Notes under the pieces: model-generated
Database searches by the model: none
What the model was told of the DNA's origin: nothing
What the model saw: the letters and a program-made list of their open reading frames with translations, nothing else
Position numbers and translations under genes: made by a program
NCBI RefSeq assembly: GCF_000315625.1
Contig: NW_005434488.1
Span: 1-40,480, forward strand
DNA from: Guillardia theta CCMP2712
Taxonomy: Eukaryota; Protista; Cryptophyta
DNA: 40,480 bases
Direction: 5' to 3'
Shown: piece by piece, positions 19,301-24,400 of the stretch
How positions within the stretch are numbered: the stretch's first letter is position 1
Layout: each line of letters starts with the position of its first letter

Positions 19301-20296
19301 ATCTCCGTTTGTCAAGTTCGACGGGCCCATGAACTGAGAGCAGGATGGAAAAATATCATACTCCAAGAACACCTTGAGGAATGATTTGCGCCATCCGCTC
19401 GCCGAGATTTCTTCCCATTCAAAGCTCTTTGCACACGATTACAACCTTGAGAACAAGAGGAAGATTGTCACCTCAATCTTGAAGGTCAGGACTGGAGATG
19501 TCGAAGAGCGGAACAAGGCAGAAGTAACATCAAACGAGGGAGCAAGAAACCAGCGTTGCTCCTGCTCCTCAAAGAACACCTTCATCTTCCCTCCCTCCTG
19601 CTCCCAGTACGCTACTCCCCCGTACTCCCCCCCGCTTCTCTTGTACGTCCCCCGTGCCCCCTCGAACTCGCCCACGTTCCCAAACGTACACGGAGCCGAG
19701 CACGAGACCTGGTAGACGCTAGACAGGCTTTCAGCCGATCCAAGAGGAGGACAGGAGCAGGGAGCTGACGGGTCGATGCAAGCCGCACGGTACGCCATCA
19801 CAAACCCCGGCCTCTTCCCTCCCTCCTCTACCTTGATCTCCATCCTCCTTGGCTCCTCTCCCTGATTGCTCTGCAGCGTCACTCCCGACGACCCTGCCGC
19901 CCCCTCCCGCGCGGTGAAGTAGAGCATGCTCGTGCTCTGGCTCATGTCCAGCCATGGCGGGACGGCGAAGAGGAGCGGGTTGTCCCAGGTGAGGTAGTCG
20001 CCGACCTGAGCTGGAGTCTGCATCTGGCAGAGGAAGGAGAGGTTTCCAGCGGAGAGGCAGGGGAGCTGGGAGGCAGTGGAGGGGAAAGTGATCGATGCTG
20101 TGGTTGCAAGTTTGCACGGGATGCCGTCAGAGGAGTTTGACCATGAGCATACGTCGAGCTGATTCGAGCATGTTGTACTGTTACATGCTTGACTGCCTGT
20201 CGGACATGTTGCTTGGCCATCGCTGACAGCAGCGACTATGAGAAAAAAGAAGAGCAGAACCTCAGTACAAATCATCGTGTCTGAGTTCAGAGCCAT
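2435..20296 (-). CDS. Gene A: giant multi-exon secreted/extracellular protein (signal peptide, cadherin-like, LamG, IPT/TIG, EAR/EPTP-like repeats, Cys-rich, cadherin-like repeats, IPT/TIG, C-terminal beta-propeller)
   Basis: Start ATG at 20296 or 20275 with signal peptide (MICTEVLLFFFLIVAAVSDG). Dozens of GT-AG-bounded exons follow, and their translations are collinear with gene B. The last exon, 2516-2435, ends ...SPIGTVSSILML*. No C-terminal transmembrane segment was seen. Not every exon was traced. Confidence 0.8.
2538..2694. repeat. Intronic ~21-24-bp minisatellite GGTAGGCATAG(A/G)AGAGGAGG in the last intron of gene A
   Basis: Directly visible. Confidence 0.9.
4500..4900 (-). other. Gene A second IPT/TIG-like domain
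   Basis: GSLTINGVNFS...VKVFVGQTACPRLLVLSDT...SPVKVQVVEI fits the IPT/TIG pattern and is homologous to gene B 39570-40160. Confidence 0.6.
4990..8110 (-). other. Gene A cadherin-like/Ig-like repeat region
   Basis: LSVNNPPDFALASHVLDVKES; LQLLPNVNGVCNLSIVALDNGNSTLLGSNRSIAQTLTLRV; VFRLNGNVYG. These carry the VNxxPxF and DxG motifs typical of cadherin-like repeats. Confidence 0.6.
5945..6364. repeat. 27-bp tandem minisatellite (about 15 copies) AGCAGAGCAAGTGAGATACAAGACAGA filling a gene A intron (5943-6397)
   Basis: Directly visible; flanked by a minus-strand gtaata donor and an ..ctcag acceptor. Confidence 0.92.
9174..9324. repeat. 13-bp tandem repeat ACATGACATCTCA, intronic
   Basis: Directly visible. 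Confidence 0.9.
9796..9900. repeat. (CCTCGT)n microsatellite
   Basis: Directly visible. Confidence 0.95.
10290..10780 (-). other. Gene A Cys-rich module
   Basis: WGGCTSYLPG|GSNEGFCSTDAVCSICSLSCSVECSVNAACEF, homologous to gene B 32690-33030. Confidence 0.65.
11330..11431. repeat. (GGAGA)n microsatellite, intronic
   Basis: Directly visible. Confidence 0.95.
11460..15400 (-). other. Gene A EAR/EPTP-like beta-propeller repeats
   Basis: NVYTWNVSTSRFHHHQSL..LLLAVAF..SSVVYSWEQGVGFVVLQPLSSLRALSVAHLQVNESRHFLVLA; LTLYQWDESLQTFTVFQQLGGVSVSDVQLVDMLSVPFLAVA. These match the EAR consensus (S.IY.W....F...Q.I.......F.....FL.VA) by eye. Confidence 0.65.
13384..13531. repeat. (CAT)n microsatellite, intronic
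   Basis: Directly visible. Confidence 0.95.
15930..16200 (-). other. Gene A first IPT/TIG-like domain
   Basis: GSVEGGAEIVVLGQF..RCRFSF..SSNKLVCVSPMW, homologous to gene [19 protein letters not shown]. Confidence 0.55.
16330..17340 (-). other. Gene A LamG / concanavalin A-like domain
   Basis: SNLSIET..GWTLSY..EEWIHVVATFNG..KMYVNG..PFLVGS..HVGSMRMLRVFSSPLSAQQI, the hallmark Laminin_G_3/pentraxin-like motif series. Confidence 0.75.
19549..20106 (-). repeat. Left arm of ~555-bp inverted repeat (coding, exon 1 of gene A)
   Basis: The reverse complement aligns to 21556-22110. Apart from a short mismatch/indel near the start and the ~52-bp divergent island, manual alignment found only 8 substitutions. 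Confidence 0.95.
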
Positions 20297-20639
20297 GATG
20301 ATTGTGAGCTTCTCTTTTCCCGTCAATCTCCAGTCGGTTTTGTTGACAGCTCCTTCATCTGATTGAGCATGTTTCAGTAATTGGCTTTGTTTTCTGCAAA
20401 CCTATCTTCTGACATTGAACCCATCGTATTCCTACTCGAAGCACCTCCATATCTCACCCAACAGTCTAAAGCTACCCGAGTTCTCTCCTTCCACTATTGT
20501 CCTGTACTACTCGGTTCTGTTCAGCTCGTTCCTGTACCATCATTCCTGTGCTGCTCATTCCTGGCTTGTCCTTCCCTTTCCTACGAGCTCCTTCACTACC
20601 ACTCGATGCTTCATCGCATTTTGACAAGTCACCCTCGTC

Positions 20640-21431: not shown

Positions 21432-21443
21432 GTATACCTACCG

Positions 21444-24400
21444 ATGTCAGGCACTTACACTGCGTCTGTCTTGCTCCTGCTTGTATGGCTGCAGGTCTCA
21501 GTATGCGATGCACAGACATGCGACATCAGTTCTACGACATGTCCCTGTAACACAACAACCACAGCATCGATCTCCTCCTCCACTGCCTCCCAGCTCCCCT
21601 GCCTCTCCGCTGGAAACCTCTCCTTCCTCTGCCAGATGCAGACTCCAGCTCAGGTCGGCGACTACCTCACCTGGGACAACCCGCTCCTCTTCGCCGTCCC
21701 GCCATGGCTGGACATGAGCCAGAGCACGAGCATGCTCTACTTCACCGCGCGGGAGGGGGCGGCAGGGTCGTCGGGAGTGACGCTGCAGAGCAGTCAGGGA
21801 GAGGAGCGAGGGAGGATGGAGATCAAGGTGGAGGAGGGAGGGAAGAGGCCGGGGTTTGTGATGGCGTACCGTGCGGCTTGCATCGACCCGTCAGCTCCCT
21901 GCTCCTGTCCTCCCCTCAGCATCCCCAAGATGTTTCCCTGGCTCTACAAGGTGGACTGCCGTCGGCCGTGTACGTTTGGGAACGTGAGCGAGTTCGAGGG
22001 GGCACGGGGGACGTACAAGAGGAGCGGGGGGGAGTACGGGGGAGTAGCGTACTGGGAGCAGGAGGGAGGGAGGATGAAGGTGTTCTTTGAGGAGCAGGAG
22101 CAGCGCTGGTACATCTCAAGGAGCCTTGACGTGAAGGATGCGCTTTACAGAACTCTCGCTGGTAGTGTGATGTCTCTGCCCGACGAGGTAGAGTGATACT
22201 TGTTGGTTTCTTTGAAGTTTGATTCCTTCACAGCTGACTGTGAGATGGGAGGAAAAGATGAACAACTCGTGGAGTTTTTGTTTCCTCTCAGTTCAAGACA
22301 TCACGGCTGGGTTTCAAACGTGCTCTCAGAACATGGAGTTGTCGCCGTCCAATGTGATTGCACCATCGACGGACTTGTACTCTTGCAATCTCAACAACAT
22401 GAGCAGGTTGGTTTCAGAAGTGATTGTGCTCATTACTAATCTGCATTTTCTTTCAGTGTTGTCTTTCTGCGAGATGTTTCATATCACACTGTCGACAAAT
22501 TTGTCACTGCATTCACACCAGTGGAAGGATACTGGCATGGCAGCATATCAACAGTCAACATCACCATGGTATCCTCTGACAAAGAGTCTTTTCTGTTCTG
22601 ATTCATCGCAGGACCAAGATGCTAAGCTTTCGAGTGTCAAGAAAGATCCCATCTACGACAAATGGGGACTGGAGTTTGCCTCTGGTAGGAGACACTTGTG
22701 TCTTTGTTGTCTGCCATGACAACCTTGGAAACAGATTACGTGACAAGTCCCGACGGTCAGTTCGTGTATGTTGAGGAGTTTGCTTCGGACTCCATCGCTG
22801 TCATCAAGAATGGAAGTTTCGTCGACCGGCTGCGCCAGGGGCAGGTGAGGCTCTTGACAACCACCTCTCTCCTCCTCCTCATATCTTGTCTCATCCCACT
22901 GCACGCTGTTCCCGCCCCTGCTCTGCTCTGCTCATTTCAGTTGCTTCTCTCGCAACGATCCGTCTACATTCTCTGCTCTCTGCTCTGCTCTGCTCTGCTC
23001 TGCTCTGCTCTCTGCTCTGCTCTGCTTTCCTATCCTTTCCTCTTATTTTCTCTCCTCTGCTCTCCTCTGTTCTCCTATGCCCCTCCTCTGCTCTGCTCTG
23101 CTCTGCTCTCCTCTTCTATCTCTCCTCTCCTCTCCTCTCCTCTCGTACAGTGTCTCGGTTCCCTCCTGAGCACGTTATAATCTCTCTTCTATCCCTCCTC
23201 TCCCTTGTGCTCATACTTATCCTCCAACCGCCAGTACCGCATGCAGTTTCAGGCAGGGCAGCAAGTCGACCCCTGCGCGTCTGCGAACCCGAACGTGGGG
23301 TCAGGAAACATCGAGGTCGAGGGGATATGCAGCACAACCAAGTTTGTGACAAAGAGCGGGACATCCTATCTTCTTGTCAACTCGGGGTGAGGACGCTTCT
23401 TGGACGTTATCGACACCTTGACCGTTGAGTTTTTCAGCTGCAAGAGATTACAAGAGTACACCTCCTTCATCAACACATCTCAATCGCTTCTTCTTGACAA
23501 GCCTTCCTCGTTTCCTTGTATCGACCAAGTATCGTTCTTCTCTCCCCCTTTCTCTCACCTGCTCATGCTGCATTGCTCAGAACTCCCAGCAAGGTTGCTT
23601 GCAAGCTCAACAGATCCAACCGCAGGTCTTGCCAAAGAACTTGTGCCCTCAACTCTGACCTGTCAACAGTTTTTGTGGAACGTCACGACCGGGTGGTGGG
23701 ATTTCTCCTACGAGTACGCAGGGGGAAGTTATTCTCGCAGTGCGAGGTGAAACAACTATGATCGCACTCATCGTGTTTGATTTGCTTCTCTTTCTCTTAC
23801 CTATCATTTCATCTGCTTTCTGTCCCATCACATCCTCTTGTGCTGTGCTGTGCTGTGCTGTGCTGTGCTGTGCTGTGCTGTGCTGTCCTCTCATCTCCTC
23901 TCATCTCCTCTCATCTTCTCGCATCCCCTGCAAGCTTGAAGTCGAGCATGTTTTATGTCTGTCGCTCTTGTCATTCTCTTTCAACAGTCATCCCATCGGT
24001 CTCATGTGTCTGTTGGTAGGCAAGAGCCCAACGTGTGCGAGGAGCAGCACGATCTCAAGATCGCCCCCTCCTCCTTCCTCAACCTCAAGAAATTCTTCGC
24101 ACGAGGTCCCCAGCGATGGTCCTCGTCCGCCACCCTCCAGGGCCCCGTGTGTCGAGATGGAGTCTGGGACAGGACAGAGGACAAGACTTTCTCTGTTCTC
24201 AACAACCTCGTCTCTTTCGGGGAACTGAGTGTAAGTTGAGAGATTATGATGACGATGAAGAGGAAGATGATGATGATGATGATGATGATGGATGATGATG
24301 ATGATGATGATGATGATGATGATGATGATGGAGATGATGATGATGGAGGTGATGATGATGGAGGTGATGACGACGACGACGACTATGATGATGATGATGA

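Follow-up and report, generated by a model that had tools for sequence, protein, structure and literature searches.

The DNA analysed here, a 40,480-nt stretch of Guillardia theta CCMP2712 (contig NW_005434488.1, positions 1 to 40,480; hereafter the window), holds two large paralogous genes placed head to head, gene A on the minus strand and gene B on the plus strand, which share a near-identical inverted repeat inside their first exons. From comparative analysis, we consider it likely that this repeat results from recurrent interlocus gene conversion between the two adjacent inverted paralogs. The near-identity extends to synonymous sites, ends sharply within a single exon, occurs in two copies, coincides with a step in G+C content at third codon positions (GC3), and is incongruent with the relationship of the flanking segments to the outgroup. 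The initial annotation of this DNA had proposed recent recombination or conversion between the repeat arms, and this proposal finds good support in the drop in synonymous divergence (dS), the sharp edges, the GC3 step and the change of topology with the outgroup; furthermore, the arm changes seen in a relative are apparently shared by both copies.

Structure of the inverted repeat

The first exons and the elements of the repeat are as follows (positions are those of the window):

19472..20275, minus strand: exon 1 of gene A (predicted, 268 codons), starting at ATG 20275 (MICTEV...) or at an upstream ATG, 20296
21444..22187, plus strand: exon 1 of gene B (predicted, 248 codons), starting at ATG 21444, with the predicted donor GAG/GTAGAG after 22187
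19549..20106, minus strand: arm A of the coding inverted repeat, within exon 1 of gene A
21556..22110, plus strand: arm B of the coding inverted repeat, within exon 1 of gene B
21577..21916, plus strand (partner 19743-20082, minus strand): block 1, 340 nt, 335/340 identical (ungapped count)
21966..22110, plus strand (partner 19549-19693, minus strand): block 2, 145 nt, 141/145 identical (ungapped count)
21917..21965, plus strand (partner 19694-19742, minus strand): unconverted island, 49 nt in each gene, 19/49 identical

The two arms are 93% identical overall in a single 561-column alignment (BLASTN of the two exon regions). Blocks 1 and 2 together comprise 485 nt at 98% identity, with nine substitutions (1.9% difference), and the longest perfect run between the arms, 216 nt (21577-21792 / 19867-20082), lies within block 1. 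Towards the spacer, a weaker 26-nt inner extension reaches 20106 / 21556, the innermost 20083-20106 / 21556-21576 being about 85% identical with one 3-nt indel, while the island between the blocks corresponds to 16 residues in gene B and encodes GSAESLSSVYQVSCSA in gene A. Both ends of the tract fall inside exon 1. The outer end stops 77 nt short of the predicted end of exon 1 in gene B, and the gap is filled by diverged homologous coding sequence (29/77 nt identical between A and B, ungapped count), so that the edge of the tract is not the edge of the exon. The arm coordinates and the 1449-bp spacer given by the initial annotation were exact, and its perfect run of about 215 bp was measured as 216 nt; the near-identity that it described also held, although the eight substitutions that it gave were counted as nine.

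In the 87.1-Mb, 669-contig genome, DNA and protein searches recovered exactly two copies of the repeat, both at this locus. An internal direct repeat of 35 nt at 74% identity was further observed within the converted domain (21802-21836 vs 22060-22094; also 19584-19612 / 19812-19840), and the N-terminal domain may, judging from this match, be built of two related sub-units.

Outside the arms, the two genes resemble each other only as proteins, as had been claimed. Their bodies are:

2843..19471, minus strand: gene A body, consisting of successive small exons, colinear with those of gene B (30-60% amino acid identity)
22188..40140, plus strand: gene B body, consisting of successive small exons in mirror image, colinear with those of gene A (30-60% amino acid identity)

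At least 25 short exon matches (tblastx and BLASTP of fragments) form a colinear, mirror-image chain that extends outwards from the centre of the window as far as 2843 (minus strand) and 40140 (plus strand), and BLASTN returned no second nucleotide-level match between the two genes or the two halves of the window. This mirror-image chain, devoid of nucleotide matches beyond the arms, points to an old head-to-head duplication of a gene with many exons. The window is of eukaryotic type and intron-rich, and each gene spans at least 17 kb.

Synonymous divergence and base composition

Divergence was estimated by the Nei-Gojobori method on the codon alignment of exon 1, segment by segment. In block 1, dS was 0.026 and non-synonymous divergence (dN) 0.012, and in block 2 the values were 0.073 and 0.018, whereas in the flanks of the same exon dS reached 2.9 in the N-terminal tip and was saturated in the island and the tail. 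Thus, dS drops about 100-fold in the blocks, with sharp edges inside a single exon, and if the blocks had diverged as fast as the flanks, at most four synonymous differences in ~108 synonymous sites would have a probability of about 1e-53. The claim that the near-identity of the arms includes synonymous sites is therefore upheld. Moreover, dS in block 2 is about three times that in block 1, which implies more than one event.

Base composition follows the same boundaries. GC3 was 0.80-0.85 in the blocks (0.82 in block 1 and 0.85 in block 2) vs 0.48-0.60 for tip and tail; for 17 other exon matches between A and B it was 0.56-0.58 (Fisher p 3e-5 and 2e-10). Such a step is expected from long-term GC-biased conversion.

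Incongruence with the outgroup and a close relative

Searches of 5.8 billion and 1.84 billion sequences recovered a sole real homologue of the exon-1 domain, a 220-residue transcript product of Hanusia phi (P0001). Other matches in the profile search of the 1.84 billion representatives were weak, multi-stretch alignments to repetitive bacterial extracellular proteins, and were set aside as motif noise; a scan of Joint Genome Institute (JGI) metagenomes with the most conserved peptides found no relative. The Hanusia product has the 21-residue Cys-rich tip segment of A, which B does not have, and in the island it matches A at 8/16 residues (50%) and B at 4/16 (25%). In block 1, in turn, the A and B proteins share 97% of their residues with each other, vs 69% between either of them and the Hanusia product. 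Consequently, Hanusia groups with A in the tip and island, while A groups with B in the blocks: judged by the flanks, the duplication is older than the separation of the two genera, and judged by the blocks it is younger, an incongruence that is the classical signature of conversion.

A further sample of the locus was found among public sequencing runs, the DNA runs being represented by de Bruijn (Logan) contigs. One run from 2023 labelled as freshwater metagenome (X5) yielded contigs 95-99% identical to the locus over window positions 17800-23700, with 3-5% difference in the non-coding DNA of the locus. Its arm is represented by a single contig (19874-20086) with a depth of 14, approximately the sum of the A-side and B-side flanks, and this contig departs from both reference arms at two positions (19913 and 20015). 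X5 contains islands of the A type as well as of the B type, each with small differences of its own. The source of X5 is a close relative or another strain of the present alga, which we take to be the marine Guillardia, and may be used as a second, naturally occurring version of the locus.

Proposed mechanism

In the history that would best account for these data, a large gene with many exons was duplicated head to head long ago. Nearly everything would then have diverged to synonymous saturation, while 555 bp of exon 1, which encode the N-terminal domain where it is most conserved, would have stayed in concerted evolution. The cause would be non-allelic conversion between the inverted copies, 1.45 kb apart, during repair by homologous recombination. 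Each conversion would preserve the homology required for the next one, so that the tract would persist as its flanks escaped. Since homologous recombination needs near-identity, a first conversion at saturated divergence is implausible, which argues that the tract has been kept homogeneous since the duplication. The 49-nt island would part two conversion tracts, either through selection for a paralog-specific segment or through a density of mismatches that stops heteroduplex extension. Crossovers that flip the spacer are a possible, occasional by-product of the same recombination. We infer that conversion has been recurrent and GC-biased, and the reasons offered for the persistence of the island are of the same conditional standing.

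Several points weigh against gene conversion as described. The conversion events themselves are read from their footprints in the sequence, with no direct sighting. At eight of the nine block substitutions (19549-20082 / 21577-22110), gene A has A/T where gene B has G/C (two-sided binomial p = 0.039), an asymmetry that the conversion model does not predict; six of the nine are A in gene A vs G in gene B on the coding strand. This bias could reflect either GC-to-AT changes in gene A alone since the last conversion or directional conversion or repair. In addition, the high GC3 of the blocks could instead stem from codon preference in a conserved domain, and GC-biased conversion is not known from cryptophyte nuclear genomes, the one paper found dealing only with the nucleomorph and none with nuclear gene conversion in Guillardia. 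The outgroup comparison is at the protein level, as a search for a nucleotide record of the Hanusia product found none, and uses one partial transcript and short segments (16 and ~65 residues). Finally, the X5 arm is suggestive of homogenisation after the strains split, on the basis of contig depth and of one contig fitting both arms, not of phased reads.

Alternative explanations

The readings that involve movement of the intervening DNA turn on the spacer, whose features are:

20107..21555, no strand: spacer, 1449 bp, with the start codon and signal-peptide-like leader of each gene and their two unlike Cys-rich tips
~20276-21443: unique intergenic region, presumed to be a bidirectional promoter
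21347..21439, plus strand: tandem array of three 31-nt units, found beside gene B and not beside gene A; every unit includes a 17-nt near-palindrome (GACCCTYGTCRAGGGTG)

Among the alternatives, an unprogrammed inversion polymorphism, in which sporadic crossovers by non-allelic homologous recombination flip the 1.45-kb spacer and both orientations coexist in cultures or populations, is unlikely but retains a real chance, and it is compatible with conversion. The inverted arms share codon phase 1 and are 97-100% identical, with the perfect run of 216 nt, and both chimeric reading frames would stay open; a crossover in the arms would consequently remain in frame and exchange the promoter half, leader and tip. 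Inverted repeats of comparable size are known to support inversions in yeast and mammals. Conversely, no contig with a changed joint or strand was seen in four runs, although contigs cannot bridge the 216-nt perfect run. The reference also joins an A-type tip to an A-type island, as does the Hanusia transcript, which argues, weakly (at most 2:1), against the fixation of an odd number of block 1 crossovers since the genera split.

That the near-identity goes back to one recent event, be it a lone conversion or a renewed partial duplication of exon 1, appears improbable. The 216-nt perfect run and the 1.9% difference between the blocks could date from one event, and the data come essentially from one genome. 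However, saturated divergence would have left recombination without the homology that it needs, the GC3 step takes a long time to build up, and the threefold higher synonymous divergence of block 2 indicates at least two events. Furthermore, the X5 relative has the same mosaic, with arm changes apparently common to both copies.

It is a little less probable still that the arms also allow in-frame flipping by homologous recombination, free of any recombinase, and that the tract has been kept partly because this toggle works. If this were true, either orientation would be found among cells or strains, and the leader, promoter half and Cys-rich tip would be swapped between two very different bodies, in a eukaryotic, recombinase-free analogue of the bacterial shufflon.

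An invertible switch of promoter and N-terminus had been suggested initially, and its geometry stood, as the frames match and both products would be open; no positive evidence came to its support, and neither a recombinase nor short core sites were seen. A programmed switch, with a dedicated recombination system flipping the spacer and thereby choosing the body that receives the promoter, leader and tip, is very improbable. What speaks for it is geometry, namely an in-frame inverted repeat that brackets the promoter and N-termini, and a spacer that is asymmetric, with the three 31-nt units on the B side only, as previously described. In agreement with the earlier remark that no recombinase was visible, Pfam scans of 22 open reading frame (ORF) pieces, which cover part of the window and leave the rest of the genome outside the scan, contained no recombinase family, and the two genes fill the window. 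Moreover, the arms are long coding homologies with a diverged island rather than short core sites, and the one RNA run shows next to no expression of either gene (two reads on the locus in ~764 million letters read).

We give scarcely any credence to selection on the nucleotides themselves, by which a read-through transcript would fold into a 555-bp hairpin and bring about RNA silencing of both genes. The near silence of the two genes and the perfect pairing of the arms over 216 nt would suit such a hairpin, but no spacer-crossing transcript was seen in the RNA run with its two reads at the locus, Rfam gave no match in 18000-24000, and the preserved reading frame, the island and the GC3 step would be left unexplained.

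An assembly artefact, with one arm being a mis-joined copy or a collapsed allele, is equally hard to credit, and has nothing specific in its favor beyond the general risk posed by near-identical repeats. The contigs of two runs from different studies (X1, from 2011, and X2, from 2021) reproduce every junction between arm and unique DNA. Those of X2 extend over 19051-19617, 19642-19775, 20053-21606, 21884-22017 and 22042-22966, so that the spacer is covered whole by a single contig (20053-21606). The perfect run forms a 216-nt contig of its own in X2, with a depth of 123 vs 62-90 in the flanks, and this approximate doubling is as expected of two genomic copies. Junction contigs from two studies and double depth together make mis-assembly very unlikely, and both arms are real. 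A mobile exon cassette, which the initial annotation had associated with many identical dispersed copies, was rejected because the genome-wide search gave two copies only and the spacer sequence is unique in the genome.

Comparison with known systems

Gene conversion between adjacent inverted paralogs has been described in Caenorhabditis elegans for the hsp16-1/hsp16-48 modules and for hsp70-7/-8 (PMC3966223). The present locus shares with these pairs the arrangement of inverted neighboring duplicates, the short unique spacer and a coding near-identity attributed to interlocus conversion. It differs in that whole small genes are homogenised in the hsp pairs, for which dosage selection has been invoked, whereas here the tract comprises 555 bp of genes of at least 17 kb, the rest of which is saturated. 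Hsp70Aa/Ab of Drosophila is a similar converted inverted pair.

The human red and green opsin genes and RHD/RHCE show mosaic conversion with selected divergent islands, and models by Teshima and Innan reportedly address neofunctionalisation under conversion. As in the opsin and RH pairs, near-identical tracts are broken here by short paralog-specific segments, but those pairs are young and in direct orientation, while the present one is old and inverted. Primate Y-chromosome palindromes undergo arm-to-arm conversion, with reported GC enrichment, and resemble this locus in their mirror-image, gene-bearing arms, short spacer and intrachromosomal conversion; however, their arms are >99.9% identical throughout, in contrast to the ~3% of each ~19-kb arm that is near-identical here.

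Regarding inversion, the human FLNA-EMD and F8 intron 22 regions carry polymorphisms driven by inverted repeats and, like the present locus, possess high-identity inverted repeats able to flip the intervening segment. Their arms are nevertheless 9-11 kb long and non-coding or comprising whole genes, with both orientations observed, whereas the arms here are 0.55 kb long, lie within coding exons and have been seen in the reference orientation only. Site-specific switches include bacterial invertons and shufflons, and, on the yeast 2-micron plasmid, FLP/FRT within its 599-bp repeats; in all of these, as here, an inverted repeat brackets a promoter or an N-terminal coding segment. Unlike invertons and FLP, which use a dedicated recombinase and short core sites, the present locus yielded neither in the scans of the window.

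The recurrent gene conversion proposed for this locus thus differs from the known cases in degree (very old paralogs, a very short tract, an embedded island) and in lineage. It is otherwise an ordinary case of gene conversion, and nothing shows flipping of the intervening DNA; the functional stakes are low unless such a flip is shown to occur. The locus offers a very clean natural example of the way conversion can hold a short coding segment of ancient paralogs in lock-step while the surroundings are saturated, and it would be early evidence of GC-biased ectopic conversion in a cryptophyte nuclear genome. For annotation and phylogeny it matters that this N-terminal domain, when used for trees, will give a wrong date for the duplication.

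Predicted products and further observations

In both genes, exon 1 encodes a hydrophobic, signal-peptide-like leader followed by Q-x-TC and by a Cys-rich, sequon-rich tip, and the tips of A and B differ from each other. The start of gene A at ATG 20275 aligns with the start of the Hanusia product. The remaining predicted boundary is:

after 19472, minus strand: predicted donor of gene A exon 1, GAG/GTGACA, placed from the sequence and from the same phase in gene B

In both genes, the predicted donor comes after a GAG codon, in phase 0. The encoded protein is plausibly of a secreted or surface type, and its N-terminal domain would be lineage-restricted. Of the giant surface proteins named in the initial annotation, the signal-peptide-like leaders and the gene spans of at least 17 kb agree with the description, while no Pfam domain above threshold came to its support, either in the two exon-1 proteins or in 20 further ORF pieces of the window. 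One body exon piece matched EPTP (PF03736) below threshold, at 13.8 bits vs a gathering cut-off of 21, and a WLS-like Pfam match, also sub-threshold, was discarded as it is located on low-complexity intron sequence. An atlas feature search gave beta-propeller-like leads only for the body exons and nothing meaningful for exon 1, and AlphaFold2, run with a 3-sequence alignment of the exon-1 domain, returned an unusable model (predicted local distance difference test, pLDDT, 34).

On the promoter side, the 31-nt units stop 5 nt upstream of the start codon of gene B, and the near-palindrome GACCCTYGTCRAGGGTG has just these three copies genome-wide. As RNA, 21347-21439 folds somewhat better than shuffled sequences (z = -2.9), and the units could be a dimeric transcription-factor site or a hairpin array in the 5' untranslated region. 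A sigma-70 promoter scan, of no relevance to a eukaryote, was at chance level.

Finally, the introns of both genes are rich in 5-nt/10-nt microsatellite-like arrays (CTCTG / CTGTG and their complements; e.g., 22960-23160, 23830-23925, 24960-25130 and 28880-28960), at which the public-run contigs end. Some reading frames give long poly-Asp, poly-His or poly-Ser runs (e.g., 13276-13625, 24244-24656 and 27109-27517), and in the gene B region 37000-39000 the G+C content falls to 0.24-0.31 over ~2 kb vs 0.48 for the window.

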